DNA of 64,000 nucleotides from Epithemia pelagica. Taxonomy: Eukaryota; Protista; Bacillariophyta. A program made the translations under genes and the position numbers. The stretch is from NCBI GenBank assembly GCA_946965045.2, contig OX337242.1:2480001-2544000 (forward strand). Reading direction: 5' to 3'. The notes under the pieces are model-generated. The model ran no database searches. It worked only from the letters and a program-made list of their open reading frames with translations, and was not told the origin of the DNA. This document shows, piece after piece, positions 23,569 to 61,424 of the stretch (its first letter is position 1; every line of letters begins with the position of its first letter).

Positions 23569-23569
23569 A

Positions 23570-24166: not shown

Positions 24167-24194
24167 CAGATTGTGCCGGGAAGTACAATGTAAG

Positions 24195-27968: not shown

Positions 27969-28100
27969 CAGTGGCGACGATTAGAAAGCAGAGAGAAAGA
28001 GCAGACAAGGAGCCTTGATTGCAGCAAGGGGGTGTCAAGCTTTGTTTGATGCTGTAGCGTTTTTGTGTGCGACAATCAATGTTCTCACATGGTCATTATT

Positions 28101-38363: not shown

Positions 38364-39254
38364 ATGTCAGACCGTCCACCTGAATATGAGTGGACTCTCG
38401 CCCTTCATCAGACTCCGCACTACGACGTCAACATCCAGGACAACCTGCGCATCGGATCGTTCGTGTACCTTTCTCACAAGACGAAAGGATCAAGGACACA
38501 CTACAATGTTGCTCGACTCGAAGAACGCCAACGTGATGAAGATGATGAAGCAATGGAATCAATTGTTGTCCGATGCCGTTTATTCTACCCCTTGTTTGAA
38601 TCACCACCAAACCAGACCAACCCAACCCCACCGTCGCACTCCTTTCGTCCAATCACCCATGGCCCTGGTAGCGAAAACACTGAACTATACGAATCAGCAG
38701 ATTTATGCTGGCTCAAGTTCATGAGCAAGACATCAGGACCTCAGTGCATCCATCCTTCTTTTGTTTTCACTCCGAAGGAACTGGAACACCCCAAGAATGC
38801 TTGGGCTGCAAGTATTTTCAACGTCTACATTGTTCGATATTGGGAGAACAAGGACTGCGACAAACGAGAACTGGTTCCCCTTCCTGATGATGCGCATATG
38901 GGTTTTATCAACGACCACCCGAAGTTCAAACCCAAACCCAATACATTTAAGCCACAGCGTTGCCTACATGAAGCCATTTGGAATGGCCTCTATACAATCA
39001 GAAAGAGCATTCACAAATTACTCAACAAACGCTCAGGACAGGGATCTGACAGAGAAGTGGTTTCCTTGAACATTGGTTGCGTTGCAATGGAGAGTATTCA
39101 GTACATCTCTCAAGTCGCCAACACATTGATTACCCTGAATACTCACCCCATTTCACTGTCCGAGTCCTTCTTTCATTTGGACTCTTCCCTATCACAATCA
39201 AAGGTACGAATTCTAATACACGCTCATGCATGTGAACCACTTCATTCCTCATAA
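38364..39254 (+). CDS. Cargo ORF with a BAH-like domain (probably one gene with 39294..39986)
   Basis: IGSFVYL..YNVARL..VRCRLF..ELYES..CIHPSFVF resembles the BAH beta-sandwich. A GTACG donor-like site at 39204 has no confirmed in-phase acceptor. Confidence 0.5.
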   Translation: MSDRPPEYEWTLALHQTPHYDVNIQDNLRIGSFVYLSHKTKGSRTHYNVARLEERQRDEDDEAMESIVVRCRLFYPLFESPPNQTNPTPPSHSFRPITHGPGSENTELYESADLCWLKFMSKTSGPQCIHPSFVFTPKELEHPKNAWAASIFNVYIVRYWENKDCDKRELVPLPDDAHMGFINDHPKFKPKPNTFKPQRCLHEAIWNGLYTIRKSIHKLLNKRSGQGSDREVVSLNIGCVAMESIQYISQVANTLITLNTHPISLSESFFHLDSSLSQSKVRILIHAHACEPLHSS

Positions 39255-39293
39255 CAACACTCACACCATTCCATTGTCTAAATCCTCCTTCCA

Positions 39294-39986
39294 TTGCAAC
39301 AAGTGAAAATTTCTTGCCATGGCGGTGTTCTTTGTTTCAAGACCCAATCCGAATTGAATGTCCTCCGCATGATATTGGGACCCAGTGCGACGTACGGATC
39401 GTCCGAACGACGTCCTAAACTCGACGATGGCAGGACAGGACTGGTGCTACGACGCGAGCAAAACCTCACAGTTGTTGCTGGTGCTCAAGATTCCAACCCC
39501 CACGAATCCGACGAAACATCGGAACCTCCATTCAAGCGCCGGATTGTGGACCAACGCGTCGATTTCATATTTTCACCTTATAATGTTCGTCTTACCATTT
39601 CGTACGAGCGTTATCAATATTCCGTGAGCCGTGATGGCAATCTCAAACACCTCCCTCTATGCCCCAATTTGGAAAAGATACTCCAAGGACAGTCTCAAAA
39701 CGATTCGGCAAGTGAAAGTGACTTCTCCCTGTCATCTATCGACACGAACTTAAAGCCACCTTCGTACACAAAGGCTGTGTCAAAGATCCACATTGGCGAT
39801 CAGTACATGTACAAGGGAGAAAGTGTCATGGAAGTCTCTTCCATCACCCGCCAGGAAACTGATGTCAAATTTGACTGTCGATGTGTTGGTGGAGTGGGGT
39901 TCAATCGTAAATCCCCAAAAGAGTCACTGGTTATCCAACGAACTGACGCTGAAGAGTTACTCAAAGACATCCTTTCATTTGCTTAA
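39294..39986 (+). CDS. Downstream part/exon of the BAH-like cargo gene, unknown domain
   Basis: 230-codon ORF on the same strand, 39 bp after the preceding ORF; its stop is 39 bp from the transposase stop. Confidence 0.5.
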   Translation: MQQVKISCHGGVLCFKTQSELNVLRMILGPSATYGSSERRPKLDDGRTGLVLRREQNLTVVAGAQDSNPHESDETSEPPFKRRIVDQRVDFIFSPYNVRLTISYERYQYSVSRDGNLKHLPLCPNLEKILQGQSQNDSASESDFSLSSIDTNLKPPSYTKAVSKIHIGDQYMYKGESVMEVSSITRQETDVKFDCRCVGGVGFNRKSPKESLVIQRTDAEELLKDILSFA

Positions 39987-40025
39987 CATTCCATTATCAG
40001 TAGTTTACATTCGATACTTATCATC

Positions 40026-43000
40026 CTATGTTTCACACTCATCTTCTGCAACTAGTTCGTCTTCATCATCATCATTCATAGTACCCAAAGACGCGTCGTC
40101 GTCCTCCTCGTCATCGTCACTGTCATCGTAGTAGTCCTCGTCATCGTCATCGTCACTATCCTCATCTTCCTCAGGGTCTACAACAAGTGATGTCCCATGT
40201 GTCATCTGCTCTACATCGTCAATTGGTGTCCATGTACCAGGTTCAAAAAAATCCCAGTCATCGAGATCTATAATATCTGCCAATTTTTCTACCGATTGTT
40301 CGTCTGATTTGTTTTCCTCTCTTGGCTGTTCCGCACCTCCATTGCTAGCTCCATTGTCCGTTGGTGACTGTCCAGCAGTAACAGTGACTTCCATTGATTG
40401 TCCGGCACCTCCATTCTCATCTCTTGACTGCTCAGCACCTCCATTCTCATTCGTCGACTGCTCAGCACCTCCATTCTCATTCGTCGACTGCTCAGCACCT
40501 CCATTCTCATCTCTTGACTGCTCAGCACCTCCATTCTCAATCGTCGACTGCTCAGCACCTCCATTCTCATCTCTTGACTGCCCGGCTCCTCCACTTTCAT
40601 TCCCTGTCTGTTGACCACCTCCATCGTCTTGTATACCCGGAATTCTGCGACAAAATTCCATTGTACCCTTATTCTTTGCAACCCAGGTTTTCCTTGCCAG
40701 CGCATTTTCCTCGCTGCAATTTGCATTACCTTCTGTTATATCACTGTATTCGTATCGACACATGAAAACCATGCGTCGTTGCAACCATCTCGCCATTGGT
40801 TCTAGTCTGGACCTCCTACCCTTTCCCCTATTTGTACTACCACCCCTTTGTGTTCTGGAAAAATAGAACGTCTTAAATAAACTATTGAATGCTGTAACAG
40901 TGTAGGTGAGTAACCATTTTCAACAAACAAGAGAACCTCTTTCGCTTTCGCAGGCTACTACTTACCTTCCCACCCCTGTTGAGCGTGGGATGACAGGTTG
41001 CGCCAGTGGATCAGGTATTCCATTACGTGACCACTACCTATCAAGTGTGCGTAGTTGGTTATCCCATTCTCACCACACAAATCCACCCAAGTTGCAAAAA
41101 ACTCATCCGCCTTGCGCTGATAGTCAAAAATCTCACTGTCTGTCATGTTGGTTTTCTTGTTAAGTCGTTCCATGGAAATGACATAGTCGGCTACACACTG
41201 CTTCCACTTGACTCGTTTCTCTGGGTTTGCGATACATATATCTACCAGTTCATCAAACTTGGGCAACATTCTTCGGATGCGGACGTTGTCCATAGTGATG
41301 GTTCCAAGTTTACGCTTCTTCTTCTCATACGGTGCTTTCCACTGCGTCGGCATATCACTCGTTCCCAATATGGACTGGTTCATACATTTTTGGACTCGCT
41401 TGATGAAGTGGTTACATCTCTTTATTTCTGAATTGTCATATTCTTCAGGCATCCAATCGAACTCTTTGACCTTTGCACTTGCCAGACCGTGTCGCAAACA
41501 CATGGTAAGAATCTTGATTCCCATGCGATTCTCCATATGGAGAATGCATGGGACCGTGTCCATCATATAGACAATTGCGGTAGCAGTCTTGGACTGCTTA
41601 TAATCATCTAACACCTTCTTTGCTTGGTAGTAAATCCACTCTTTGACATGGTGGGCCTTGAGTCGTCGTTGTCGTTGCTCTAGTGTACCATGCACATCTA
41701 GTTCTCTAACCACCAGATCATTGGTTATGAACCTCGCATATTCCAGACGCTTGGCAACATCGGCTTTGCCTAGATCAAAATGGATGGACTTGATGTTCCC
41801 CTTCTGAACTTTGGTTGGGTCCATCCTGGGGTCCTCTTGCATAATCAACTCGGAATCACCCCATATATCAGTTAGACTCTCGTAGATGCTAGGCATCTCC
41901 TTGACGAAGTGGTCCACTTCCTTTTGTAGACTGTTTACATGAGCCCTTGTACACATCTTGTGATGTCTACATACCCAGTTTGTTTTTCTGGAATGTCCTA
42001 GTTGCGAGCACAGGCTGCAGTCTTCGACACGTCCTGTGGGGAGATGGAGTTCTCCACTTCGTACAGTACATTTCGAACAAGGGAAGTTAACTTGTTGAGC
42101 GGCCCCACCACGCCCAAGTAGCTTCCACTCGCAACTCATATCGCAATTAGTGCATATTTTGAGCGGCCATACTCCGAATTTCGTGGGAAGTACTTTTACG
42201 GCAGCTTCACCGATCTCTTCGATCATGTTCCGAAAGATCGATCGCACTAAGCCCTTGCTCTCTGGACGACAAACACACACAACCGGAAAACAACTGTTAC
42301 GTGATTGGGCAAGAGGGTTGGACATGTCGTTGAACTTCAGCCCTCCCAGTGTATGGCTTAAGTTTTTAGTGAAAAGAGCGCCGTCCAAACGCTGTGCCAA
42401 CTGGATGGGCCGCCAACGAGCGTCTCCGTACAGACAATTGCCTGCCACTAATATTCCTGCCATAACATCGGCTGCCCGGAAGGCAAATCCTTCCGACCCA
42501 TCAGTCTTGTGCCGGAAAAGTCGGTAGGGGCAGAGAAGACTCCCAAACTTCTCGACTTCTTTGGCTACATCCTGGATACAAGAACTACTTGGGATAAGTG
42601 TGTGTGTATTAGCAACTCCATTGCTTTCCACTTGTCGTAGGACTTCAATGCCGCCAAGGTTTAGGACGCCACCTGCGAGATCCATTTTCCGTAGAATGTT
42701 AAACAGTGTGAAGACGTAATCGCGTACATATTTACGAAATACACCATATGCATTCTCGAACATGAGCCCATTGTGTATGGATTTGTCAAGGCACAGTTGT
42801 GCCACGTCTCGGAAGAATTCTCCTGCTGCTCTACTCGTGTCATCCATCCTACTGGTCCTTGATACGAGGATTTCTCGGATATGTGACACCAGTTTTTCAC
42901 AGTCCTTTATGTCGTAGCAAGAGGCGGGGAGATCAATCTCTTTGCTCGTCGCTTTTGTTTCCGCGTCTTTATCCCTCCAATACCGAAGGTCATCTGATCT

Positions 43001-44245
43001 ATTCTTCAGCTTTCTTCTACAATCGGTCAAATCGTCGGTTACTTTCTTCAGGGACTTGCGATAGTCAGACACAGCTTGATGTGCTTGTAGCAGATCCTGT
43101 TCCAAACAATGGATCTGATTGTGGAGACGTGTGATTTCTTCGTTGTCTTCTTGTGTCGAATCCATGTTGGCAGATTCGTCAGCGTTATCTAGAGTTTCAT
43201 TACTACTAAGGTACGTCCTATTTCTTGTCTCTTCAGTTGTTGATGAGTCGCCTTGCTCATCTCTGGACTGCTGACTCTCTGCATTTTCAAATGGGGGCAG
43301 GTCATCTAATTCTTCATTGTCGACATCAAATGACTCGGCTTCATCGACTGCATGGTCTCGAGAATCATGAGCATAAAAGCTGTAATGGCTGAGGGGGTCC
43401 TGGAAAAGAGGTAAGTTTAACAGAAACTGTGGAGTTTCTTTCTTGTTTGCAGCGTCGTTGTATTTGTCTTCATCAATCTCACTAATGAGGTCGTCATCGT
43501 CTTGAGGAACATTCCCTTGGGTTGGGTTCTTAGTTTCATCCTTGCCTTGTGGATGCTGGTACAGAATGCTTTCGAGAGTGGATGATGGAGGTGGAGGTTT
43601 GATCCTTGATCGTTTCCTCCTCTGTCGTTTCTTGCGTTTGCGAGTCGTTCTCAGGGACTTGTCGCCATTGCATGGTCGACAAAACAAATCAATTGGCGGT
43701 GGTTTTGGAGAGTTCTTCTTCTTTGGGTCGATGTATGTGGGATGCCAGAAATTTGTGTGCTTGGATCTACAGGTGTATCGACCGCCTATTGCCTTGCGGT
43801 TTATCTTGTGAGAAGGACGGAAACCAGACTCGTCGTCTGCCTTTTTGCATCGGCTACAGAAGGTGTATCCTGGGTAGCGTTCCTCGCGGTCTCTGCCATA
43901 AACAGAGCAGGGGACATGGTCTTCGTCCATAAAATCAAGAACAATCTGGGCAATCCGCTTTCTCTCAACAGAGTTTTTTTCACATGTGATATTCGATTCT
44001 TTGCGTCGGGTCCTTGTCTGTTTGTTGGGAGATGGAAGGAGCTTCTGGGCTTCCTCCGCTTCGCGTTTTGCCAGTTCGGCGAGAATTTCTTCTTCCGTCT
44101 TGAACCTGCTATCCTTGGCACCTCCATCGTTGGAATCTGATGCCGTCTCTTTTTCTCGAAGGCGACGAGACTTCCGAGAACCTTCAGTGGAAGCGGTGGG
44201 TTGCCTCTTCTTTGCGTAGTTCTTCGGGGGCTTCTGTTTTGGCAT
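40026..44245 (-). CDS. RAG1-core/Transib-like DDE transposase (~1380 aa); join(44245..40966,40891..40026)
   Basis: RLDGA (D), NCDMS (D), PCSKC, PCILH..R, NYAHLIGSGH and QQGWE|AFN (E) parallel RAG1 D600/D708/C727,C730/H937,H942/E962. A 74-nt GTAAGT..CAG intron fuses the two ORFs in frame. Confidence 0.82.
40405..40590. repeat. 30-bp tandem repeat (about 6 units) encoding NGGAEQS(R/T)(D/N/I)E in the transposase tail
   Basis: Period-30 units starting ccattctca at 40411, 40441, 40471, 40501, 40531 and 40561. Confidence 0.9.
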
Positions 44246-45013
44246 TCTACGAGGATAGGATAAGTAATAATACAAGTATTACTCGACTCAAATGGCGCTG
44301 TCCTCATTGTTTCATCGTCGACTTCTCTCGGTTGGAGTTCGTACTTCCGATGACTCAACTACGATTGAAAGGCGATTAGGTTGTTATATGTTATTCATTG
44401 ATGTATATAAATTAATGCTGTAGAGGTGTGCACGTGTGAGTGGGTGTGCTGTGCTCGCATTTTTTCCCCAAAATTTTGTTTGTGTGTGAAAGGTGCCAAT
44501 TGGACCCGTTGTATCTCGACGAATATTACCTACTTTTGTCATCGGACAGAAACGTAACATTGTGTTGTATTTAAAGTGTCTTGGACCGTTGGCCGATGAC
44601 AAAGTTAGTGGGTACTGCATTGGCAGTTTAGAACCAAAATCAGATGGTCGTTGGGAATGAAATTTTGGTGGTTATATTTAACAAAGGATGAGCCACTGTT
44701 TGGGTCATAGTTGGTGGGGGTTTCTGATATGACATCTTGGTGGATCTTGGACGTTGGGGTCTCGCCACGCGCGCACAATATGCACAGAATGCTGCTATTG
44801 AGAGGTCCGCAGAAACAAGGACAGCAGACAGACTAATCCTTAACCTTAACGTACCAACTCCACCGCCTGTCACACCTTTGTACACGCCTGTCACACCGTG
44901 TACACGCCTAAGTAATCGTCAAAGAAATAACCGTTCTCTTTCAAATCTGAAAGTCTTCAGATCGGCATTGGAAGATATTTCGCTATTGCATTCAATTCAT
45001 TGAGTATCTAGCC

Positions 45014-48000
45014 ATGGACGACAACAACGACGATGGAATGCTACATGATCAAATTCATCAACAGTTGGATCGATACTTCAACTCCTTAGAAACAGAATGG
45101 ACTTCTCCAATGACCTTTGCAATGCACACTGGTGATGATTGCATATGCAACCAAACAACAAGTTGCTTCGACATTTGTGCTTTCATTGGATGGGGCCCTC
45201 AAGCGGAGCACGTCAAAGGGAACTTCGCATATTTCTGTCAAACAGCATACCCTCCATGTACAAACCCAAGCAATATATTCGATGAAGATGGGTCCTTTTT
45301 GAAGCTAAAAGCTGATATCTCCAAAACTGCGATGTGTGGAGGATTTTCTATTGTCTCCAATGGTACATCACACAAAAAGGCGTTGGCCACTCGCAAGGCT
45401 TTCCCTAAAGGAAGTGAACCTCCGTACATGCAACGTACCTTCACTTGTGACCGCTACCGCCGCTATACCAACAAACGGAAGCGAGTATCTGTGGGAGACC
45501 CCAACATGGAACACCGTAAGGTTTCACTTCATAATGACAAGAAAGGCAACAGTAGGGGGGTTGATGGCAAAAAGGGACCAAGAAAAAACGTGACAACACG
45601 TGCATTACAAAATGAAGACACATGCTCCTTTCGCTTTGATATATTTGTCGATATGTATGGCTTTTATGTCAAGCGTAGTTCTGGATCTGTCACCCACTGT
45701 AATCATATGAAGCGGTTGCCTGCGGATATTCCAATAAAACTTCGTCATTTGACGTCAGAACAGAGACGGAGTACAGCTGAACTTGGTAAAGCCCTGACTC
45801 GTCCAGCTAATGGTCGAAACTTCTTCCATGCAAATCACGATCTCACACTGACTCCACAACAACTTCGGTATGCATTTCACAACTTTGCATCAGATTCAAA
45901 ATATCACTACAATGGTATTGAAGTAGGTGCTGGAGCAATTGTTGAATGGTTGCGATCAACACCAGACATAAGTTACTGCATATGGGGGGCAAAACCTCCT
46001 AATGTTGTAAACGCTCAGGTCCAGCGACAAGCTGGCTTAATCTTCAGTGAAAACCAGGTCGATTGTGGAGTGAGACATATATCAGACCTTACTAATTTTT
46101 GTCAAGAAGTTCTTCAAGAATACACTGCTGATATGGAAAAAGAAAGGCAACAGTAGGGGGGTTGATGGCAAAAAGGGACCAAGAAAAAACGTGACAACAC
46201 GTGCATTACAAAATGAAGACACATGCTCCTTTCGCTTTGATATATTTGTCGATATGTATGGCTTTTATGTCAAGCGTAGTTCTGGATCTGTCACCCACTG
46301 TAATCATATGAAGCGGTTGCCTGCGGATATCCAATAAAACTTCGTCATTTGACGTCAGAACAGAGACGGCGTACAGCTGAACTTGGTAAAGCCCTGACTC
46401 GTCCAGCTAATGGTCGAAACTTCTTCCATGCAAATCACGATCTCACACTGACTCCACAACAACTTCGGTATGCATTTCACAACTTTGCATCAGATTCAAA
46501 ATATCACTACAATGGTATTGAAGTAGGTGCTGGAGCAATTGTTGAATGGTTGCGATCAACACCAGACATAAGTTACTGCATATGGGGGGCAAAACCTCCT
46601 AATGTTGTAAACGCTCAGGTCCAGCGACAAGCTGGCTTAATCTTCAGTGAAAACCAGGTCGATTGTGGAGTGAGACATATATCAGACCTTACTAATTTTT
46701 GTCAAGAAGTTCTTCAAGAATACACTGCTGATATGGAAAATTTAGGTCTACAAGAAAACCAGCATTTCTTCATCGCTTGTGCATGGATCACCAACAAGGA
46801 AAAGAGAATGTTCCGCTTATTCCCTCATGTCCTCAAGATTGATGTTACAGAGGGAACAAACAAGGAGTCACGACCACTTCTTACAGTTTCTATCCGATCC
46901 ACCTTTGGGAAATATATTATAATTCTGCGGATGTTTCTACGTGATCAGCGTCAGGGAACTTTTCGATGGGTATTTTCCTTTGCCCTGCCAAAACTTCTTG
47001 GAGATCAATGGACATCCCAAATTCAAAGTGTCATAACCGATGGTGACTCACATGAGATTGTTGAACTTGAAGAGGCCTGTCGTCGTTACATGCCAAATTG
47101 CTTTCGTGTTCGTTGTGGGTGGCATATTATTCATAAGGGATGGTTACGACATTGCTCATTCGGGAATGCCATTGACTCAACGTACATTTGACAATACAAA
47201 CTGTTTTGCTACACTGTGAAACAGTGGTGTTACACGTTCATGTACCCAAGATATTGTGAAAATGAAAATGAGTTGGTGATATCAAAGTGCCTGCTCTTGG
47301 CCTACATTCATTCACGGCAGGTTCGAAAGTTCCTTCCAGACAACTTACGTTGGAACGTGCAAAACTTTTTGATTGGGTATGTTTTTTTTTCACGATCGAC
47401 AACTTGTGCACTATTACAGACAAAATCTTCGTCATTATGAAGAGTGCACTAACAGCAGTCACGAAGGTACAAACTGTGGTATCAAAGAGCACTCAGCTCC
47501 AGTTTTACCAGGTGGAACAGTCCAAGGCAATGCAGCGTTGTTGAAGTTTCAATCAGACATTCTAATCAATTCACAATTACGTCTCGCAGCAACGCGAGTC
47601 GAAGCTAAATCTGTTTGGATGAAGGAGAATCTCCTACCACTCAACGGAATGGTAACTGAATTGTGCCATGATTTAGTCCACAATGCATGGACGCGCCGTG
47701 ACAAATATGCAATTCGACGTGATAGATCATCACCATGGAACTGGCATGTCAAAGTGGTAGATACCAACTGTTTGGATACAGAGAAGAAACGCCTTCATCC
47801 AGTATGGCATCGTACAAGAACGGTAACATTGGATTCTTCCGGGCGCTTATTGTGTTCCTGCGGTACGTTTCAAAGGTGTGGTTACCCATGTTCGCATCAA
47901 GCCGCAGTACTGTGTTTTGAGTGCCGGGACTACCAAGGCTTCACCCATCATGATGTGAGTATTGTGTGGTGGAAGAAATACATTTTCTTTGGCTTTCGCA

Positions 48001-48800: not shown

Positions 48801-48842
48801 ATAAAGTAACAATTGATCAGTTAATAAATTTTATTTTACCTA
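48799..48842. terminator. Putative bidirectional polyadenylation region between the convergent MULE transposase and TET/JBP genes
   Basis: AATAAA twice on + and TTTATT (AATAAA on -) within 45 bp. Confidence 0.45.
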
Positions 48843-48845
48843 TAT

Positions 48846-50114: not shown

Positions 50115-50135
50115 TTCAATACTCAAGCAACCAAT

Positions 50136-50937: not shown

Positions 50938-52584
50938 ATGTCGATCATCCACCACAAAAGTGACAGTGACAACTCCATTCTTCACTTTACCTCGACCTGT
51001 GGCATACAGTCCTCCCTGATCTGCTGTCAGTCCTACGCTTATTTCATCGCAGACTGTCTGACATCGTGCATATTATCACCACCCAAAGAGCAATTACAAT
51101 CCATTCTTACCGCCACAGCTTCCTGGTTGATCCGCCAACAGCAATGGATTGATGTTTCTTCTTCAATCCAATATGAAAATAATCATCCGTGTATCATTTT
51201 TCAATACACCTTCGAAGAAGTCCTTCATCAAGTCAGTTCTCATATGCTTCAGTGGCTGAATGGAGAAGACGATGAAAACCTTGTATCCATTTCAGAAAGC
51301 ATGGACCCCGCCAACATCATACTTGAATTGAAATGCATACCTCAGTTTGCCGTTTGTGAATGCAAAGGTTGTTTGGAATGCACATCGTTCGTCGTTGGAG
51401 AGACAAATGATTTTCCCAAAGACTCCATTACCGACCTGATTCTCTTTTGGATCCAACGCAACCAAGCTCATTTTCTTGTAACGGACAACAATTCTGGTAA
51501 ATCAATGGAGCCTAAGTCACTGGAGAGTATATTTCCACTTCTATCCCAATATATTGGACGGCAAATCGATACCACAAGGGTATCTCAAGACGCAAGAATC
51601 TCCATGGCTTCCAACAACAAGTTCAGTCGCCACTCCAGTCCGTCTCGACATAAATATCAAACTCGACAACAAAATCATCTACTATCTCAGGACATTTTAC
51701 TGAGTTCCAAATCACGGACAAAGCCAAACTACGATGACGGTCGTCGTTTCAAACACGGAGACCCATTCAAAATATCCCCATGCAGAATTTCCTGTCCCAA
51801 TCTACCTCTATGTCCTAGTGATTCAATCATTGCTGACAGAGTGACTCTCATTGAAGATCTGAAAGAATTCCACGAGATAGCCAAGATGTCTGGGCTACAT
51901 TCTCCAAGGGACGCTTGGGAGGACTGGATGGATTGTGGGGCAACAGACAAGCTTGCCGACAAAGCTTTTATGTGTCTCATTATAATTCTTATGAGCTCCA
52001 GCACCACCGACAGTCAATTGGCGGCATTCATTCCACAAATGTTTTCCAGTGGACTTACATCAGCGGACGGTGTAATAGAGGTATCACAGCGGATTGGAAT
52101 GGATGCCTTTTGTGCCCTCATCTCTCCAGTTGGTCGATTCCACCAAAATGCAGAAAGAATTGTACATGCGGCATCTTATTTTGTTGTCAAACACAAAGGC
52201 CGCATTCCATCTGATATATCCATCCGAGAACTCACCTCTTTATTCGGAATTGGATACAAGACAGCACAGATCATTGTCTCAAGTGCATTCGGTCGAATGG
52301 ACGGAATTCCTTCGGATGTCCACGTCATTCGCTGGTGTGAGGCACTCAAATGGGTGCCACCACTTGCAAATGACGGTCTCCTCTGTTCCAAGTGCATTGA
52401 ACAATGGCTGCCTAAATCCAAATGGCATCTTATCAATCCACTTTTTGGGGCGTTTGGTCAGCTCATTCAAAATCCTGATACACGGCCACCTCTCTTGAGC
52501 CTATTGGAGGAGAAGGCTTCGGATCTGGTGAAATCTGTCTTTCTCAAAATGCTGAAGGCATATGGCAAAAACAAATTCTTCTAA
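50938..52584 (+). CDS. HhH-GPD DNA glycosylase/AP lyase (endonuclease III/NTH-like) with a long unknown N-terminal region; hAT cargo
   Basis: ILMSSSTTD, ELTSLFGIGYKTA (HhH with catalytic K), IPSDVHV (catalytic D), EQWLPKSKW..INPLFGAFGQ; no 4-Cys FeS motif at the C-terminus. Confidence 0.85.
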   Translation: MSIIHHKSDSDNSILHFTSTCGIQSSLICCQSYAYFIADCLTSCILSPPKEQLQSILTATASWLIRQQQWIDVSSSIQYENNHPCIIFQYTFEEVLHQVSSHMLQWLNGEDDENLVSISESMDPANIILELKCIPQFAVCECKGCLECTSFVVGETNDFPKDSITDLILFWIQRNQAHFLVTDNNSGKSMEPKSLESIFPLLSQYIGRQIDTTRVSQDARISMASNNKFSRHSSPSRHKYQTRQQNHLLSQDILLSSKSRTKPNYDDGRRFKHGDPFKISPCRISCPNLPLCPSDSIIADRVTLIEDLKEFHEIAKMSGLHSPRDAWEDWMDCGATDKLADKAFMCLIIILMSSSTTDSQLAAFIPQMFSSGLTSADGVIEVSQRIGMDAFCALISPVGRFHQNAERIVHAASYFVVKHKGRIPSDISIRELTSLFGIGYKTAQIIVSSAFGRMDGIPSDVHVIRWCEALKWVPPLANDGLLCSKCIEQWLPKSKWHLINPLFGAFGQLIQNPDTRPPLLSLLEEKASDLVKSVFLKMLKAYGKNKFF

Positions 52585-52627
52585 TATATAGATTTTTACG
52601 GTACTTTGTACACTATCCTTCACAATT

Positions 52628-53997
52628 TCATTCACTCGCTGAATCTTCGGCCTCATCTTCTTCCCTATTGTCGTTATCGCCCGTGTCATCCCTCTCGCCT
52701 TCGTTACTATACTCTGCGTCTGAATCATTTTCCTCACTGTGGCTATCACCGACGACTTCATTCAACATATGCTCCAGGTTACTTGCCACATTTTCCTCTG
52801 TGTCAGAGCCGGCCTCTGAATCTTGAACCCGTACCGCCGACTCAGGAGTCGCACCTTTCTTCTTCTTTGCCCTGGGTGAGCGTCGGACTGACTGTGATTC
52901 TCTATCCTCTTTGGACTTTATCCGGGATGATGGTTTTTCTTAGACCCGCTTTTGGAACCTGTGGACTTGAGTTTGGTTTGTTTTGCTTTCTTTTGGACAG
53001 GTGGTGTCTCATTCGCTTTTCTCTTCTTTGAACCACTCCCACTTGTTCCAGTAGTCGGCTCAACATTCGTGCCTTTGTCTTTGTCTTTGCTTGCCGCTCT
53101 TTTCTTCTTTTCTTCCGCTGCCAGTTTTCTTGATTTCTCTAAGCAATCGAGCCGTTCGATTTCTTCTCGTAGATGAAAAGTTATGGCCTCGTCGTTGTCA
53201 ATATCTTCATCTTCGACAACGGATTTGTCCTCCTCATTGTCACTTACATCCGACAAGTCAATCTTCACCACTTGAATGTCGTCAGCTGTCATGGGAACTT
53301 TGGCTTCCCCTTCTCCGTCGCCCAGATCAGGGAAATATTCATAGGTTGGATCGGGAGAGTTCGTTGCAAGAGGGTCTTGTTCAGACGACTTCTTCGCTTT
53401 GGAGTTGAAGTCGTCCAAAGCCTTGGTGGCTTTCATTAGCAACATGTTGCGAAGATACTCGGCTTGCTCCGTGTCTTCGAACAAATGCGGAGTCTTCTTC
53501 TTCTCATTACCAACTGCTGTTGCATGTGACGGATCAGTATCCTGCGTATTGGACGGTGTATCATCAGTGTTTCCGACCTCGCTTGCCTGGACCTCGGTTG
53601 CCTGTTTTGCCAGATTGCCTGTATCCGTGGACGTTCCCCCAGTGCTGGTTGCAGTCTCTGCAGTCTTCTCCACCGCCTTGTCGTCATCATCATTGTCGAT
53701 GGCCATCACTTCTGCTTCCCGTTTCTTATTCTCAATAGCAATCTCTCGTTGGACAATCTCGAGGCAAATCTTTCTGGTTAATTTCTCCATCGCCCTCATC
53801 TCGAAATTCTTGGCTGTTGTTTTGGATTAAAGTTTGTTTTGTTGAAACCAGGAACCGAGTGAAAATACTCGTTCCTGAAAAGCATTAGTGGCAGGCTTTG
53901 TAAGCCAAATCACAGCCGATGGGAACACGTGGGGAAAATTGTCCTTGTTGTGATCCCACCACGCCATTACATCAAAATACTCGCCAACCACTAAGAA
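52628..53997 (-). pseudogene. hAT transposase, 3' part (dimerisation domain and long charged tail)
   Basis: YFDVMAWW..FPHVFPSA..LTKPATNAFQERVFS; in-frame TAA at 53827-53829 and a frameshift near 52935. Confidence 0.85.
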
Positions 53998-54500
53998 CAC
54001 TGCACACATCTTTCCTTCTGTTTGAGTACTGTTTATGTTAATCAACACCACTACACTGAATAAGAACGGCGCTCGCGCTCCCTATAAGATTGCGCTTATT
54101 CAGTAGGCCGATTTTCCTATTCACATCAACATGTTCTTTATTCAGACAGTATTCACCATGCAAAACCTTATTCAGAACCCGATACCCAAAACAGTAGGCT
54201 CTATTCAGTATGTCAATGCGTTATTCAACATAAAACCATATTAATCAACAACAACCCACTGAATAAGACCTGATGCCTGACCTCTTTTATTTAGAAGGGC
54301 ACTACTGAATATTATCTTAATTGGATAAAGGCTGTTGAACAAGTATTCGACAGCGAAGTGGAAGTCGAAGTTATAGTAAGAACTTTTCGTTCCACAACTT
54401 TTGAGGAACAAAAGTCAGCCCTATTGGCACCTTGATATATAGTCCGTACTTGCACAAATCCATCAACCAACAGCATATCAGTACTAACAACGATCTTAAT

Positions 54501-54875
54501 TTAAGCTTTGGAAGACGATTTTGTATTTCTACGACTATTTTGTGTTCGAGCGACTCCACCTGTTTCTTTTGCCTTTTCCATCAAAAGTTTTGCATGACAA
54601 GCCATGCAAAAGGCGTGATCACATGAATGATCATGTTTTACAGCGTTAGGGCAAAACATCACCGGATTCTTCGAAGTCACCTTAATACCACCCGGACCAC
54701 CGAATTTCTTGTTACATGTAGAGTTCATACACTTCCTGGGCCAAGTCTCATTATATGTGTAGTAGTCCAGTGTAAAGAAGGATCCAGTGTCTTGAACCAC
54801 GTAACAAGATAAGTTGTCATGTTCACAGGCTGCTTCCACCAATGGACTTGTATTCTGTTCAGTCCCCTGCTCCAT
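54501..54875 (-). CDS. Small Cys/His-rich zinc-finger-like protein (cargo; may be the last exon of a longer gene)
   Basis: CEH..CY..CxxxxC..FCxN..CxHxFCxxC, a RING/PHD-like ligand pattern. Confidence 0.5.
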   Translation of the reverse strand: MEQGTEQNTSPLVEAACEHDNLSCYVVQDTGSFFTLDYYTYNETWPRKCMNSTCNKKFGGPGGIKVTSKNPVMFCPNAVKHDHSCDHAFCMACHAKLLMEKAKETGGVARTQNSRRNTKSSSKA

Positions 54876-54915
54876 ACACCAACATTGTTAGAAGCTTCAT
54901 ACAATAATCCAGTAA

Positions 54916-55875
54916 TCAGAACCTTTCTCTTACCTTTTCCTCTCCAACTTTCTCCTTTTGACTGTTCTCAATTCTTGGACCCTGACGACCAATCACTTCC
55001 TTACTGATGCGACTTGAACTCCCTTTACGACCCTCATTTGTTCGTCGCAATGATTTCTCCTTTGACTGACTTTTCTCCTTGGATTGACTTGCTTTTGGTA
55101 GAGTAGCATTGCTACTCTCTCGATTACCTGAATCTCCTGGTAGAGTAGTACTCGCTTTTGGTAGAGTAGCAGTGCTACTCTCTCGATTACCTGAATCTCC
55201 TGGTAGAGCAGTACTTCCACTCGCCGGACTTGCTTTTGGTAGAGTAGCAGTGCTACTCTCTCGATTACCTGAATCTCCTGGTAGAGTAGTACTTGCTTTT
55301 GGTAGAGTAGCAGTGCTACTCTCTCGATTACCTGAATCTCCTGGTAGAGCAGTACTTCCACTCGCCGTATTGACCGCGTTGCATAGAGTAGTATTGCTAC
55401 TCGCCATATTGGAAAGAGTAACATTGCTACTCTTTGATGCCTTAGAAAGACAATCATTGTCTTCTCCCATAGAACTCCGTTGTCGTCCAGTATTTGTTTC
55501 ACTGGTTGCATTTACAATTCCCAAAATTGATCCTTCCGGGTGCAGTGTCTCTGGTCCATGCATGACGCCAATAGGAACCTGTGTCACCAAAGCGGAGGGC
55601 TGACAGTCATTATCTATGACTGTATCGATTGCTTGCTGCGTGCCTGGCGAAAACAAGGCAGGCGATTGAACATCATCCTGTCTTTGTTGAATTATATCAT
55701 CTGTATCATCCACATCAGTCATTTCCGTCTCGTTCTGCGCGCCCCCTTCACAGGTTTCGTTGTTTCTCGTCATCGTAGTGTTTCGTGCGCGTCGTTTCTG
55801 GTCTCCGTTGTCAGCAGCACCTCTGAATTTCTTAGCCAGTTGTTCTATGAAATCATCCTCAACATTTACTCCCAA
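54916..55875 (-). CDS. Low-complexity cargo ORF with 4 x 21-26-aa repeats (LPGDSGNRESSTATLPKAS)
   Basis: Minisatellite at ~55088-55366 with a 141-bp higher-order period, in frame. Confidence 0.45.
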   Translation of the reverse strand: MGVNVEDDFIEQLAKKFRGAADNGDQKRRARNTTMTRNNETCEGGAQNETEMTDVDDTDDIIQQRQDDVQSPALFSPGTQQAIDTVIDNDCQPSALVTQVPIGVMHGPETLHPEGSILGIVNATSETNTGRQRSSMGEDNDCLSKASKSSNVTLSNMASSNTTLCNAVNTASGSTALPGDSGNRESSTATLPKASTTLPGDSGNRESSTATLPKASPASGSTALPGDSGNRESSTATLPKASTTLPGDSGNRESSNATLPKASQSKEKSQSKEKSLRRTNEGRKGSSSRISKEVIGRQGPRIENSQKEKVGEEKVRERF

Positions 55876-55974
55876 CTCGTCTTATAGAAAGCTTCTCGCA
55901 TTTTCCAAAATATCCTTTATAGTCACAGACAACTGTTAGAAAAACTCATATGGATTCAATTGTGTAACACTGTT

Positions 55975-56847
55975 TCAGATACGTACCGATGACATTGTGG
56001 CAACATATTCTTCGAGAGGTTCTGCCTTTTTCTTCGATGTGACGAGATAGAACATCTCATTGCGATTGTACCAGAATTTCTTGTACTCCTTGTCATTGGA
56101 CTGTCCGGTTGTCAATGACAACGACCATCCCGCATGTTTCAACATAGGAATCATCAAACCACCCACAGTTTGAGACTTTGCCGATCTTCCAACCGCCGAA
56201 AACCCTCCTCGGTCATACTGACTAATTCTAGTCCGTTTGTTATTTTCGTTGTACTTGGGCTTGGTTTGCTTGAGTAAGTACATCTTATTCGTGAACAACC
56301 AGCTGTCAATGATCGAAGTGAGCCACGAGCGGTCTCGGTGAAATCGGTGTACCAGTTCATAAACGAGATTCATGTTCTCCTGGTTGAATTCCATCTTCAC
56401 CAAGACAGCTCTCATATCTGCCAACGTGACGGGCTTTGAGGTTTTACCAAGTAAGGTGAGATTCATTTCCTCGGCAATATCGCAAATCTTCTCTGTATAC
56501 TTTACCACAATAAACGCTCTCAGACTATCTCGTGTGTTTTGAATCTCTTCCAACATAGCGTCACCGTCTGGCACCGTTCGATCACTGAGTCCATCGGTAT
56601 TTCTATTCTTCCGATATTGCCATAAGAGTTCGGCGTCTTTGGCAGAATTTGGATTCTTGCCGGAAAGGGGATTGAAGTAATCCTTTGGATAAGGAAGAAA
56701 ATCCGCAGGATACAATCCGGTCTGCTGTACCACTTCTGTCCCCGGTCGAGATGTCGAGGCACCAATTAGGCTTGTGTACTCGATCTCAGGTCTACCATTG
56801 TCCACCACGCTTCTAATCCGTTCTAGATTTCTTTCGCGATCTGTCAT
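55975..56847 (-). CDS. Unknown 290-aa cargo protein (possibly spliced to the downstream ORFs; TnpA-like position)
   Basis: Intact ATG ORF, divergent from the transposase. Confidence 0.55.
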   Translation of the reverse strand: MTDRERNLERIRSVVDNGRPEIEYTSLIGASTSRPGTEVVQQTGLYPADFLPYPKDYFNPLSGKNPNSAKDAELLWQYRKNRNTDGLSDRTVPDGDAMLEEIQNTRDSLRAFIVVKYTEKICDIAEEMNLTLLGKTSKPVTLADMRAVLVKMEFNQENMNLVYELVHRFHRDRSWLTSIIDSWLFTNKMYLLKQTKPKYNENNKRTRISQYDRGGFSAVGRSAKSQTVGGLMIPMLKHAGWSLSLTTGQSNDKEYKKFWYNRNEMFYLVTSKKKAEPLEEYVATMSSVRI

Positions 56848-57297
56848 TTTGCTTTGCTGATCAGTAGGTGTCTACCGTTTTTCAGTGTTGTATCCAAAAT
56901 TTGGAGACCGTTCAAGAACGCAGGCATCGTCGCGCCTGCATCTAACTGCCGCCATATTCATTGGAATAAATGGTTTAGCCGGCGCACTATCGTGACTGAG
57001 TCGATAAATTTTTGAATAGTGACATGTTAGAGTCACTATGTAGACGATTAGCGTTACATAGGTCATTGTTTGTCAACGATTCGTGACTTGTTTATTCTAA
57101 AGGACTCCAATCCCCAGAAGTAACAGTCGATAGGGAATGAATTCCAAGATTAAGACAAGACCAAAAAGTTGGTCGCAGATATACTGGAAGGAGGAGGTGC
57201 ACCATGGCAACTTGACAAATCCGGTCTCGACGCTGGTTCATCAGATATAGGCGATTGTGTTGGACCTAAAGCCTTAAATTGTGTCCTCGACAGCAAT

Positions 57298-59985
57298 ATG
57301 ACTTCCGTTGAATCAATAATTTGTCATTTTCCATGTGTGAAATGCTCTGAACTCTGTCCACTAGCAGTACACCCAAACTCCCCGAGTGATTTTCATTTCG
57401 GATTGTACCATGGACGATGTTCTACTGCCACTTGTCTACAACAAGACCAACCATTTTTCATATGTTTCCCATGCCTGCAACTGCCACTGCCATTCAAAGG
57501 TCATCATAAGGGTTACATAGCAGAATGGCGTGCTGTACAACGCCATGCCCAATCAAAATTTCATCAAAAAGCCATGGAAAAATGGCGCGCATCGAATGCC
57601 CCTTCCCGATTTCAAGGCCATATCGAAACAACAGTGGATACAATGCAGAATGCGTCAGATACTCTACCATTGGACCCTACAGAGTGCTGTACAGAGGACA
57701 TAACTGACGATATACATACAAACGAAGATTTTGAACTCAAGTCTCTTGACCAATTATCGTCGCTGGGCTTTGCATCGGGTTCTAAATCACCCCAATTCAT
57801 TTGGGATAGTTTGAAAGGACATGGCAGCGGACTGAAATCATTGACAGCCCGCGCTTTTGCAGTCCCATTGGACAAAGTCACGTTACAAGAATCGGAATTT
57901 TCAATCTTGTTATCATCTCTTCTCATTGAGTTGACGGAACGTCAACGAGAGTTACTTGCCGAAATTTTGTTACTGGCTGGGAACAGTTCCAGTAAGGATT
58001 TATCCATATTTCAATCAACCAGGTTGCCTACGTCTACAGAAGATTTTGACAGGTTTTACCTTAAAGGCAAAGATAGCATCATGCAAAATCTTCCGATACC
58101 AATTTTGCAAAGTGCTGCCGATGGCTCCCATGCTCGAGTTTCTCTTCCAGATCTTATAGCAAACGAGTTGGGGAAGGCCCAGAGTTACGATGACCTCCAG
58201 TTATCAGCCGAACTACAAGTACAAGAGTCAGACCGGGAACCCAACGATGCCGCCACTCCTAACGGACGACGGCTTTTGTTATCATTACAACAAGATTCTA
58301 CCAATGACCCCCATAATCAATGTGTATTCAATCTCTGGCTTAGGGAGTGGCGAGACGACTTCGATCCTAACAACACGAAGTCGTCTCGCAACCAAGTCTG
58401 GGTGAATACGTTCACAATCGGGCCCGGTATTGACGCAACAAACGGAGCAACCACATACTTCATGGCACTTGGGGCGAAGGGCGACGATCATTCCGTTATT
58501 GAGAAATCATTGCTGCAAGAAATCCAGGGATTCAATTCTGCTGGTCACGATATATTCCACGGAGGATTGAAGAAGGTAGTCCGTGTTCGTCTCGGGAAAC
58601 TTGTGACTGGAGTGGACAGACCAGAACGAACGGCCATGTTCTCAGTTGGTGATCATAATGGTTCGTTTTCCTCATGTTGGGGCGTATCGACTCGGATTGA
58701 CAACAGATTGAAGGAAAATCGGCTTCCCTCCTGTTCCCGATGTAGAAAAAGACGCATGGTTGAATTGGGATTATGTCATCCAGTACGATCAGACAACAAT
58801 CGTTGTTCAGGACCACAATGTCAAAATTGGAACCTCTACCATCCGACACTCTTCTTTTCTGCACCAAAGAATTATCCAACTGTCTGTGATAGATCAACTG
58901 GTGCTCCAAAACCAGCACTTGGACGCCCAATATTCAATGTCAAACGGAATGCCGGTTCTCAAACATCTCAAAATGGAGGTACGACCGAGGAGAGAAGAAA
59001 CAATCCGACACGGACAAAGCGAAATCGCTCTGAGTCTCAAGATGAGGGACCCAAACTAAGATCTCATCCCATTTCAATACCATGGCTCAAAGATGCGGTA
59101 CTATTTGCCCATCATAACATGAAGACACCGTTGTCGTCAGTCTTACCTAATGGTAAGCGGTTTTGGAACAAGGCTCAAGCCAGTGCATATTTGCGTAGTT
59201 GTGGCTGTACCAACAAACTCATCGATTCAGTCTATGCTTCTGCCAAGAATGCTGATACCTTCCCTCCCTTTCCAGAGACATGGATAGACGAACAGGGCCT
59301 GGAACGGTGTCACTTCGCACCAATGCATATGATCTTCCTAGGGAATGTCAAAACCGTTCTAGAGATTCTATGTACATGGATGGGGTCGCATGAAACTTTG
59401 GCAACTTTTGGGAAACAGATGAATACTTATCTTACTCATGTCAAGATGTTGCGATGCACTCGATACTTTTCATCACAACCTTTGTCCACTTCAAGCTGGG
59501 GAACAGGGACATGGGTTAGTGAAAACTACCTGTTTGCATGTCGAATTCTCAAATTCGTCATGTTATTACCATGTTTCAAAAGTGATCGGCTGCATCGAAG
59601 AGAAGACTTTGCTTTGGAATATCAACAGGTTTCCAGATTCGTATGTGCTGCAAATGTAGCTATCAGTTGGATCATGACAAACCAGAAAGAGATTCATAGG
59701 TTACCAAACGTGGTCAAGGTGTTCTTGGATACTATGTTTGAAATGGATGTCCTAGTGGGGAGTGACGGTCAATCTGGATCTGAGTCTGTCGGGTCTGCAA
59801 AACTAAGTCATGTTATGAAGAGCAATTCACTCGGTCTACTCTTCATTTCTGAGTATCATGACGATATGGGACCTGCTTGCCTCCACTGGGAGGGGGGTTT
59901 CGAAGGAGAACGGAAGATACAGCAGGTTAAACCTGCTTTGTCCATCAAGCATTGTTTGACGAATGGTGTAGATGATATGTTCTAA
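57298..59985 (+). CDS. CMC/EnSpm-like DDE transposase with N-terminal Zn fingers
   Basis: EWRDDFDP (D), GVDRPER (DxPxR), PMHMIFLG, WEGGFEGE (E); CxxC and C2H2-like motifs upstream. Confidence 0.78.
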   Translation: MTSVESIICHFPCVKCSELCPLAVHPNSPSDFHFGLYHGRCSTATCLQQDQPFFICFPCLQLPLPFKGHHKGYIAEWRAVQRHAQSKFHQKAMEKWRASNAPSRFQGHIETTVDTMQNASDTLPLDPTECCTEDITDDIHTNEDFELKSLDQLSSLGFASGSKSPQFIWDSLKGHGSGLKSLTARAFAVPLDKVTLQESEFSILLSSLLIELTERQRELLAEILLLAGNSSSKDLSIFQSTRLPTSTEDFDRFYLKGKDSIMQNLPIPILQSAADGSHARVSLPDLIANELGKAQSYDDLQLSAELQVQESDREPNDAATPNGRRLLLSLQQDSTNDPHNQCVFNLWLREWRDDFDPNNTKSSRNQVWVNTFTIGPGIDATNGATTYFMALGAKGDDHSVIEKSLLQEIQGFNSAGHDIFHGGLKKVVRVRLGKLVTGVDRPERTAMFSVGDHNGSFSSCWGVSTRIDNRLKENRLPSCSRCRKRRMVELGLCHPVRSDNNRCSGPQCQNWNLYHPTLFFSAPKNYPTVCDRSTGAPKPALGRPIFNVKRNAGSQTSQNGGTTEERRNNPTRTKRNRSESQDEGPKLRSHPISIPWLKDAVLFAHHNMKTPLSSVLPNGKRFWNKAQASAYLRSCGCTNKLIDSVYASAKNADTFPPFPETWIDEQGLERCHFAPMHMIFLGNVKTVLEILCTWMGSHETLATFGKQMNTYLTHVKMLRCTRYFSSQPLSTSSWGTGTWVSENYLFACRILKFVMLLPCFKSDRLHRREDFALEYQQVSRFVCAANVAISWIMTNQKEIHRLPNVVKVFLDTMFEMDVLVGSDGQSGSESVGSAKLSHVMKSNSLGLLFISEYHDDMGPACLHWEGGFEGERKIQQVKPALSIKHCLTNGVDDMF

Positions 59986-60017
59986 TAGACATCCACTCGT
60001 TTCACTTGTATTATAAC

Positions 60018-61424
60018 TTAAGGTCCTAAGATAGGAGGAATCTGGATCATATTGTTCTGATACGCCCATACTTGTACTCGAGTGGAGAGTTTTTGTGTTT
60101 TCTTCAGATATCCATTGTCTCTAAGAAGTCCCAGTACGTTGGTAATTTGTCGAAAGTTGAAATTGGGAATCGCAATCACCTTCTCGTGGAAAAACTTGGA
60201 GCTCTTCCATTCTGTGTTTGGAGGAGAGTCAATCAGAGAGAGTATGACAGTGAATAGAGCCTGTCGGTCGGTTTCTATGTCGTCTTTCTTGATAAATGGC
60301 GTACTGGTAGTCCAGGTCAACACATCTGAAACAGTACGTTGGTTGACAATGTCCTTTTGCCATTTAGGTTGGGGAGTCGATCCAATACTATCAATAGGAG
60401 TATTGTTAATGAGGGGAAGCAGACGATTTTTTGTTCCTTGACGAGTGCCTTTGATGCGACGAGATATAAAAATGACAAGACCCTCTCCCCATTCATCCAT
60501 AGATCCTGTTTTGGGACGGATTTTCTGTAGTATCTTTTCTCGACAAAGGGGAATGTTGTCAAGATTATTGGCAACTTCTTTTATGTACCGATAGGGTTCG
60601 CTAACCATGATGGTCGTCGAAGCACCGCGTACATCCATATTTGCTTGTCTGTCAGACAGTACCGACCGAAAGGCTGTCCCACATAATATCATTCCACATT
60701 GGAACCACTTGCCCATGGTAATGAAGGCAACTCTCTCGATAAATGTCTTGGGCTTGGTGTTAGTCAGAACCATGGTGTTGCAGCGACCACCTGTTAAGAT
60801 CTCATCAACGATTATTCGGAACCCATGACGTTTTGACAGTGCTGAAATGGCCATAAGTGCCCGGGAACTTAATATGCTTCCATTGGAAGCTAGTATAAGT
60901 TCGAGGAATAATGTCGAAATAGGTTCGCATATACAGGATTGGTATATGCATCGTGCGTGTAACATCCTCATGCATTCGTCTTCATAGATGACCAGGGAGT
61001 CATCGTCCATTGTTCCCGGAATGTGGTAGGGTAGTGCAACGGTGTGTTTCCTTGCAACGGGAGATAGATGTTCTGTGTCGGGATGTGCAATGAATGAGGG
61101 ACCGTCGTTAATCTTGAACGTAGTAGTTGTCCAGGATTGTAGCGGGCCCTGGTCTCCGGCCACGTAGGAACCGCATGCTACCAAAACCGTGGAGGTGTTA
61201 CCTTCGCAAAGACTTGATATAGCGAAAAGGTTGGCATCAGAGCCGTTCGGGGTGAGCTTTTCAAAAGAGAAATTTCCTTGTGTGGTTTCAAGGACGCATT
61301 GTTTTAGTGCCTCTAGTGCTTGATAATCATCATCAATGAATGCAGTGTCGTATTTTCTTTTGTATGAAGATTGATCAATCAAAACAAATTGTTTTCCCCA
61401 ATTGTTGGCCAGGTCGTCTGACAT
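60018..61424 (-). CDS. Class-III PLP-dependent aminotransferase-like protein with an extra C-terminal helical/wHTH-like segment; CACTG cargo
   Basis: TPNGSDANLFA, FLELILASNG, IIVDEILTGGRC and FITMGKW (PLP-lysine position) follow the class-III motif order. Confidence 0.75.
   Translation of the reverse strand: MSDDLANNWGKQFVLIDQSSYKRKYDTAFIDDDYQALEALKQCVLETTQGNFSFEKLTPNGSDANLFAISSLCEGNTSTVLVACGSYVAGDQGPLQSWTTTTFKINDGPSFIAHPDTEHLSPVARKHTVALPYHIPGTMDDDSLVIYEDECMRMLHARCIYQSCICEPISTLFLELILASNGSILSSRALMAISALSKRHGFRIIVDEILTGGRCNTMVLTNTKPKTFIERVAFITMGKWFQCGMILCGTAFRSVLSDRQANMDVRGASTTIMVSEPYRYIKEVANNLDNIPLCREKILQKIRPKTGSMDEWGEGLVIFISRRIKGTRQGTKNRLLPLINNTPIDSIGSTPQPKWQKDIVNQRTVSDVLTWTTSTPFIKKDDIETDRQALFTVILSLIDSPPNTEWKSSKFFHEKVIAIPNFNFRQITNVLGLLRDNGYLKKTQKLSTRVQVWAYQNNMIQIPPILGP

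Follow-up and report, generated by a model that had tools for sequence, protein, structure and literature searches.

Tail-to-tail pairing of transposase and partner genes in four nested DNA transposon families of the diatom Epithemia pelagica

The locus described here is a 64,000-nucleotide window of the genome of the diatom Epithemia pelagica (GCA_946965045.2, contig OX337242.1, positions 2,480,001 to 2,544,000 of the forward strand), in which four nested DNA transposons, termed E1 to E4, were resolved at 38012-64000 from their inverted repeats and a reading of the flanks (Table 1; all positions are those of the window). Judged by sequence, the region reads as a nest of four DNA transposons, each from a different superfamily. 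Every one of them carries a transposase or putative transposase gene which faces a partner gene tail-to-tail across a very short spacer, and this layout is family-wide and no local coincidence. A preliminary description of the locus had proposed the same architecture four times, with stop codons separated by 39, 45, 43 and 32 bp. These four gaps hold, the stop codons having been read directly and agreeing with the lists of open reading frames (ORFs), and so does the convergent pair in all four elements, but the wider notion of one plan for the whole element does not, as E4 has four genes.

The order of nesting can be followed from the insertion points. E1 sits within the left terminal inverted repeat (TIR) of E2, approximately 8-9 nt in from the end of the repeat, and when it is excised in silico together with one duplicated A, the inverted repeat of this Mutator-like element (MULE) gains TCGCCATT at both sides; the E2 repeat probably extends about 8 nt more, to 38003-38011 and 50763-50770. 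The flanks of E2 are partly palindromic and its left TIR is occupied by E1, and no target-site duplication is cleanly readable. E2 in turn went into E3 at the very beginning of the glycosylase gene, and E4 into the E3 hAT transposase gene, the latter being concluded because the hAT dimerisation domain (53842-53979) and the ORF at 63122-64000 abut in an intact copy; in a 97% identical copy the segment 63150-64000 is contiguous with that domain. Each of the eight paired genes is present in multiple copies in the genome, which measures 60.5 Mb, and E1 has a 99% identical copy on contig C7. In the window copies the TET-like, glycosylase and P4 ORFs and both exons of T1 are open, and others are broken: the MULE transposase by a 602-bp duplication, the hAT transposase by E4 and a frameshift, and P1 by in-frame stops.

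Table 1. Elements, genes and stop-to-stop junctions of the transposon nest, in window positions
Feature	Position	Strand	Description
E1	38012-44800		two-gene transposon; 24-nt TIRs (CAATAGCAGC...), inverted repeat 96% complementary
P1, E1 partner gene	38364-39986	+	two same-frame ORFs, 38364-39254 and 39294-39986, with in-frame stops between
E1 junction	39987-40025		39 bp; + stop ends 39986, - stop starts 40026
T1, putative E1 transposase	40026-44275	-	1105-codon exon (40958/40966-44275), candidate intron 40892-40965, second exon to 40026
E2	44801-50762		Mutator-like element; 53-58-nt TIRs, inverted repeat 98%
MULE transposase gene	45014-48800	+	three ORFs in the window copy
E2 junction	48801-48845		45 bp, 84% A+T; stops 48800 / 48846
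TET/JBP-like 2-oxoglutarate/Fe(II) dioxygenase gene	48846-50114	-	422 aa from ATG
E3	from ~50764 to past window end		hAT element carrying glycosylase gene
Endonuclease III / NTHL1-like HhH-GPD glycosylase gene	50764-52584	+	606 aa, domain at residues ~390-585
E3 junction	52585-52627		43 bp; stops 52584 / 52628
E3 hAT transposase gene, 3' part	52628-53979	-	dimerisation domain 53842-53979, then ~400-aa low-complexity tail; frameshift near 52918-52936
E4	53998-63149		9.15-kb element; CACTGCAC... termini, CACTG...CAGTG, 23-nt TIR at 83%
G1	54501-56847	-	several ORF blocks, divergent from T4; tblastn blocks kept in 8-14 family copies
T4, putative E4 transposase	57169-59985	+	~15 genomic copies
E4 junction	59986-60017		32 bp; stops 59985 / 60018
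P4, E4 partner gene	60018-61472	-	weakly like class-III aminotransferases
G4	62070-62693	+	divergent from P4; 70% identical in L009/L010, 34% in L017/L020
E3 hAT transposase gene, continuation	63150-64000	-	runs off window end

Two of the four junctions depend on how a gene is read. The main hAT transposase frame ends at 52918, and to reach the stop at 52628 one has to shift to the +1 frame, open from a run of A residues near 52918-52936. The alignment with a 96-97% identical copy on the same contig breaks at this A-run, within an open frame of 1263 aa, which suggests a frameshift in the window copy, with 43 bp as the apparent layout of the family. The stop at 40026 is the end of the second exon of T1, 3' of a candidate GT-AG intron of 74 nt (GTAAGT...CAG) which joins the frames by frame arithmetic only; in the paralogue L004 both parts of T1 lie in one continuous ORF of 1285 aa.

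The best defined of the transposases is that of E2, for which the label MULE given in the preliminary description was sound. Three Pfam domains lie above their cut-offs, namely MULE (PF10551, 31.8 bits against 27.6), ZSWIM1-3 RNaseH-like (PF21056, 37.6 against 27.2) and SWIM (PF04434, 27.2 against 19.6). A tandem duplication of 602 bp (45539-46140 = 46140-46740, 99.7% identical) interrupts the frame in the window; copies elsewhere in the genome with 96-97% identity have an open frame of 1082 aa. The partner of this transposase, with a tandem array of two 179-bp units (98%, 50131-50484) directly upstream of its start codon, had been labelled TET. Neither this protein nor ten of its relatives has a Pfam match, and no PDB sequence was matched even with an 81-sequence profile. 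When 1.84 billion representatives were searched with a profile, 1129 relatives were retrieved, and the family appears from these sequences to be a large unannotated dioxygenase family, found in metagenomes and genomes, with an invariant HxD...H...K signature and, in the ten members scanned, no Pfam domain. H321, D323, H374 and K393 are invariant in the 81 aligned sequences, the first three corresponding to the iron-binding HxD...H triad of TET/JBP enzymes (81/81).

A structural model points the same way. AlphaFold run with a five-sequence alignment gave a predicted local distance difference test score (pLDDT) of 36.7, which is unusable, and the 81-sequence alignment was used instead, giving a pLDDT of 88.5 and a predicted template-modelling score (pTM) of 0.87. 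Foldseek placed CcTet, CMD1, TET2 and NgTET1 in ranks 1-23 for this model (E 6.6e-10 to 4e-7, with target-normalised TM-scores of 0.19-0.61), and FTO and other 2-oxoglutarate oxygenases ranked below the TET/JBP members. The TET label is thus upheld as regards the predicted fold and the triad, but not as regards the arginine expected after the distal histidine or a match to Pfam Tet_JBP: the basic residue 19 positions past H374 is a lysine (K393) and not the usual 2-oxoglutarate-binding arginine. Because of this replacement, and of the missing Pfam and PDB sequence matches, we refer to the protein as TET/JBP-like and not as a demonstrated member of TET/JBP.

For E3 both earlier labels, glycosylase and hAT, were well chosen. 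In a phmmer search of PDB sequences the glycosylase matched human NTHL1 over residues 392-568 (E 1.8e-17) and bacterial endonuclease III (EndoIII; E 7e-10 to 3e-8), and it scores 20.5 bits against Pfam HhH-GPD, under the cut-off of 26.2; at least 72 genomic copies were found. The hAT dimerisation domain (PF05699) scores 31.5-31.6 bits against a cut-off of 21.4 at 53842-53979 on the minus strand, and related ORFs of 1200-1400 aa beside other copies of the glycosylase carry the same domain. The portion of the gene for the DDE/RNase H catalytic core, like the right end of E3, falls past the end of the window.

The genes of E1 are less easily placed. T1, for which at least 42 genomic copies of 35-99% identity were found, has no Pfam family and no PDB match by single sequence or by four-sequence profile, so that the earlier description of it as RAG1-like is not supported at the sequence level. 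No relation between T1 and T4 was detected by hhalign. P1 has at least 60 genomic matches and is continuous in other copies (500-555 aa); a Pfam scan with E-values allowed up to 5 gave it no family, PDB sequences offered no meaningful match, and a BAH domain, which had been suggested for this region, finds no support there.

E4 consists of four conserved coding blocks in the order <-G1, T4->, <-P4, G4->, so that its outer genes G1 and G4 read outward. In an alignment of T4 with its relatives the motif order D, D, CxxC, HxxxxH, E was read by eye (invariant D396-D399, D483/D495, C522-x2-C525, H715-x4-H720 and E785), which resembles that of CACTA/Transib-type transposases as defined in passages of PMC12730594, a resemblance without Pfam or PDB support, T4 having no match in either. 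The window E4 subfamily has no close genomic copy, the best being 55% identical. For P4 the term aminotransferase is weakly supported: weak matches to Pfam Aminotran_3 fall in the same region in 7/9 members (best E 0.004), with an invariant Asp...Lys pair (D223, in VDEILTGGR, and K255, 32 residues apart), but they stay below threshold, the window protein scoring 15.2 bits against a cut-off of 30.5. It also matches GABA aminotransferase at E 0.02, and the family profile has no match in PDB. No Pfam family was found for G1, the variable middle block of which contains 63/141-bp tandem repeats (55086-55367, 95-98%).

The family-wide extent of the pairing was assessed by cross-matching by hand the genomic match coordinates of the two genes of each pair. 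T1 and P1 are convergent at 36/41 loci, the MULE and TET-like genes at 18/18 (with the identity of the MULE falling to ~25%), the glycosylase and the hAT dimerisation domain at 63/69 (1.1-2.4 kb apart on opposite strands) and T4 and P4 at 13/14. The convergent layout holds at no fewer than 130 genomic places over the four families, and at no genomic locus where both genes were found was any other orientation seen. Both pairing and orientation are kept among family members as low as 25-45% in protein identity.

The stop-to-stop gaps measured in E4 are -26, 0, 0, 9, 15, 17, 26, 29, 32, 42, 62, 105, 111 and 584 bp (median ~27), the last from a copy with a premature stop; all other members of the family (L009-L021) have a C-terminal extension of ~180 aa which T4 of the window lacks, yet its gap to P4 is 32 bp. 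E1 gaps are 39, 39, 93 and 146 bp, and those of E2 are 45 bp in three near-identical copies, 96 and 287 bp in two paralogues and ~60-100 bp in other copies, as estimated from coordinates. Two outliers aside, the gaps measured lie between -26 and 146 bp, and the 3'-3' spacer remains very short (mostly 0-150 bp), though its sequence is not conserved.

Relatives in other organisms extend this picture. Two metagenome contigs carry T1 relatives of 28-36% identity, each facing a convergent ORF, at distances of 16 and 1 bp from the stop; the two partners are homologues of one another, and one of them has a weak collinear match to P1 which, at ~10 bits and with E-values calculated on a three-sequence set, is only suggestive. 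T4 relatives on two other metagenome contigs (JGI; L029, L030) have a convergent ORF at ~100 bp, and on metagenome contig L026, which has a distant TET-like gene, no adjoining MULE was detected. The European Nucleotide Archive assembly ERZ21939226 was considered as a further species and rejected, for it carries this very locus; since it is of the same species, L023-L025 are taken as paralogues.

The partner genes also change in step with the transposases. Across 21 pairs from seven E4 copies the pairwise protein divergences of T4 and P4 are correlated with r = 0.975, a descriptive value as the pairs are not independent, and in every pair P4 is slightly more conserved than T4. Synonymous divergence (dS) is saturated between E4 subfamilies, with nonsynonymous divergence (dN) of 0.22-0.43, and the youngest E4 pair has a dN/dS of 0.15-0.28, based on few changes. 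In E3 the classes of glycosylase identity (95-97%, 72-73% and 35-48%) are paralleled by a fall in the hAT tail from 94-96% to 54-58% and in the hAT N-terminal segment from 97% to 71% to 22-39%. Sequence comparison shows that, under purifying selection, the reading frames of both genes have been kept and the two diverge together. The long co-evolution of partner and transposase that had been proposed earlier is borne out by this correlation, by the saturated dS, by the orientation kept at such low identity and by the convergent ORFs beside the metagenome T1 relatives; the word cargo is not, as the partners behave as conserved core genes, intact and co-diverging with the transposase.

These data bear on the simplest objection, that the partner ORFs are chance antisense or decayed frames, a notion which draws on most of them having no Pfam family. 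Intact ORFs of 420-610 aa are kept in dozens of copies at 35-70% identity, the TET-like protein has its 1129 public relatives and a confidently predicted fold, and the glycosylase is matched to NTHL1; such an artefact is already refuted by the conservation data and its probability is negligible.

A more serious alternative is that nothing here is specific to transposons: short convergent spacers would be normal in a compact genome, and the orientation would be the frozen accident of a single capture per family. Within a family orientation is shared by descent, and therefore only four independent events stand behind the locus counts given above. TET-carrying transposons of fungi vary in gene orientation, according to passages of PMC12730594, and a different contig of this species has host-like convergent ORF pairs separated by 96 and 110 bp. 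Against an accident, all four independent families are convergent, which has p = (1/4)^4 = 0.004 if the four possible arrangements of two genes are taken as equally likely. Against ordinary spacing, the few host-like pairs (96-417 bp) have longer gaps than most transposon junctions, and the abutting layout is also present on metagenome contigs from other organisms. A literature search for statistics on convergent genes or 3' untranslated regions (UTRs) in diatoms gave nothing usable. On balance we think this alternative unlikely, though it deserves to be kept in view.

The closeness of the stops raises the question of what happens to the two transcripts. At a gap of 0-17 bp any 3' UTR must enter the coding sequence of the partner, and from the sequence an antisense overlap is there an almost necessary consequence, provided that both genes are transcribed; at gaps of 30-150 bp overlap is likely, depending on the lengths of the UTRs. 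The preliminary description proposed overlapping 3' UTRs or a shared bidirectional poly(A) site, and it is possible to see the abutting ends as a selected regulatory device, a shared bidirectional 3' region in which double-stranded RNA (dsRNA) or transcriptional interference couples or limits expression of the pair. Two separate 3' UTRs cannot fit into the 0-17 bp of several E4 copies or the 1-16 bp of the E1 relatives, the short gap is retained over deep divergence despite the unconserved sequence of the spacer, and spacers are richer in A+T (0.62-0.84) than the adjoining coding sequence (0.53-0.61). AATAAA does occur on both strands of the E2 spacer, as had been described, twice on the plus strand and once on the minus strand. 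Among the 18 junctions compared, however, this feature is restricted to the window subfamily of E2 and no motif or palindrome is common to all, so a shared poly(A) site is not general. The spread of gaps within families, from -26 to 287 bp, also makes a precisely placed common site less plausible, in the distant E4 relatives it is another gene that T4 faces, and self-made dsRNA would be expected to draw RNA interference onto the element. We therefore regard a regulatory device of this kind as decidedly unlikely.

The explanation that we prefer as a whole, and consider somewhat probable, is that these nested families each have a conserved accessory gene tail-to-tail with the transposase, that E1-E3 are compact units transcribed inward, that the overlap is a by-product, and that the partners edit the methylation of their own elements. 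In E1-E3 the two genes would fill the element, each transcribed inward from a promoter in the 200-650 bp adjoining one terminus; from start codon to terminus E1 has 352 and 525 bp, and E2 has 213 and 648 bp. Transcribed inward, both genes would terminate in the middle, and the element would thereby be self-contained, without read-out into its flanks, a plan which follows the logic of the maize element MuDR. The minimal spacer could reflect a compact genome, in which selection or a deletion bias favours compact elements, and the antisense overlap of mRNAs at gaps of 0-30 bp would be a by-product and not a purpose.

As regards the partners, two of the accessory proteins are by similarity enzymes of DNA bases, namely the TET/JBP-like dioxygenase and the EndoIII/NTHL1-like glycosylase. 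HhH-GPD glycosylases remove 5-methylcytosine in plants. The accessory enzymes are probably editors of the DNA marks of their own element, a view taken by analogy with these plant glycosylases and with the fungal TET-carrying transposons described in passages of PMC12730594. Most likely they would oxidise or excise 5-methylcytosine in the element's own DNA and so counter its silencing. A bolder version would have at least four superfamilies converging independently on the combination of a transposase with a DNA-mark-editing or chromatin enzyme, with an obligatory antisense overlap as a governor which, through dsRNA or interference, balances transposition against anti-silencing; we think this version quite unlikely.

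Several points weigh against the explanation by inward transcription and self-editing. The TIRs are of only 23-58 nt and the subterminal regions are dissimilar between the two ends, so there is no duplicated TIR promoter of the MuDR kind. E4 does not fit inward transcription, for its T4 and P4 lie inside the element, each beside a divergent gene that reads outward, and given the order of the four blocks they would need divergent internal promoters in common with G1 and G4. In the distant E4 relatives of L029 and L030 the homologue of P4 lies 5-6 kb downstream of T4 on the opposite strand, with other ORFs between, an arrangement that may belong to an element of a larger type or may result from nested insertions. 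The promoters, the 3' ends and the overlap are all inferred from the DNA, and the partners in E1 and E4 have no established function. Finally, the background for comparison is thin, as only about four host-like convergent ORF pairs are available (gaps of 96, 110, 175-344 and 417 bp), two of those in the window being local duplicates of one pair.

The clearly host-like gene closest to the nest is one with an HSF-type DNA-binding domain at 35719-36609 on the minus strand. Further away lies a low-copy pair of convergent ORFs of 556 aa and 280 aa, both without a Pfam family, of which three local copies with 80-95% identity occupy 11717-14647, 16478-18244 and ~26126-28028; two of these copies are separated by a Copia-type element (18541-24205).

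Among the partners are dioxygenase- and glycosylase-like proteins, the two types of enzyme that remove 5-methylcytosine in animals and plants. If the partners do edit the methylation of their own elements, these families would offer a natural system in which to study transposons against silencing. The recurrence of the layout would, in that event, point to a general constraint on the addition of accessory genes to TIR elements. With so many young, near-identical copies, the question of 3' overlap is directly testable.

Several known systems resemble parts of this arrangement. The genes of maize MuDR are transcribed convergently from both ends. Like E2, MuDR is a TIR element of the Mutator superfamily with two genes, the transposase mudrA and a lineage-specific second gene, mudrB, but the partner in E2 is a TET/JBP-like dioxygenase and not mudrB, and its TIRs are 53-58 nt long as against ~220 nt, with no duplicated TIR promoter evident. 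Passages of a 2019 survey (PMC6446971) describe mudrB and give the diatom MULE clade one ORF only. Convergence is also seen at the ProtoRAG and vertebrate RAG loci, which bear E1 some likeness.

There, RAG1-like and RAG2-like genes lie tail-to-tail. ProtoRAG is comparable with E1 in that a transposase and an unrelated conserved partner are convergent between TIRs; it differs in that the Pfam and PDB searches of T1 found no sequence similarity to RAG1 or Transib, and P1 shows no Kelch, RAG2 or other known domain.

The closest parallel in gene content is with the TET-carrying DNA transposons of fungi, where several unrelated superfamilies in one lineage carry a TET/JBP-type dioxygenase, described as a likely anti-silencing device that counters methylation (Kojima 2025, PMC12730594; Iyer et al. 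2014 as cited there). According to the passages concerned, these elements occur in rusts, mushrooms and Pezizomycetes, Mutator is not among the superfamilies named, and gene order and orientation vary. In E. pelagica, by contrast, the dioxygenase is confined to E2, the other elements carry a glycosylase, an aminotransferase-like protein or a protein without an assigned function, and the orientation is uniformly convergent. Accessory proteins encoded by transposons and acting on the element's own epigenetic marks are likewise mentioned, in passages of PMC12730594 and PMC6446971, for the Arabidopsis VANDAL/Hiun elements (the anti-silencing protein VANC) and for oomycete transposons carrying SET genes; the proteins and mechanisms are different, and these passages report no fixed tail-to-tail layout. 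Our literature search found no hAT element with a glycosylase and no Mutator element with a TET-like gene. Convergent two-gene TIR transposons were already known as isolated cases (MuDR and ProtoRAG), as were transposon-borne TET genes in fungi; what is new is the recurrence of one tail-to-tail layout in four unrelated superfamilies, within one genome and at more than 100 loci.

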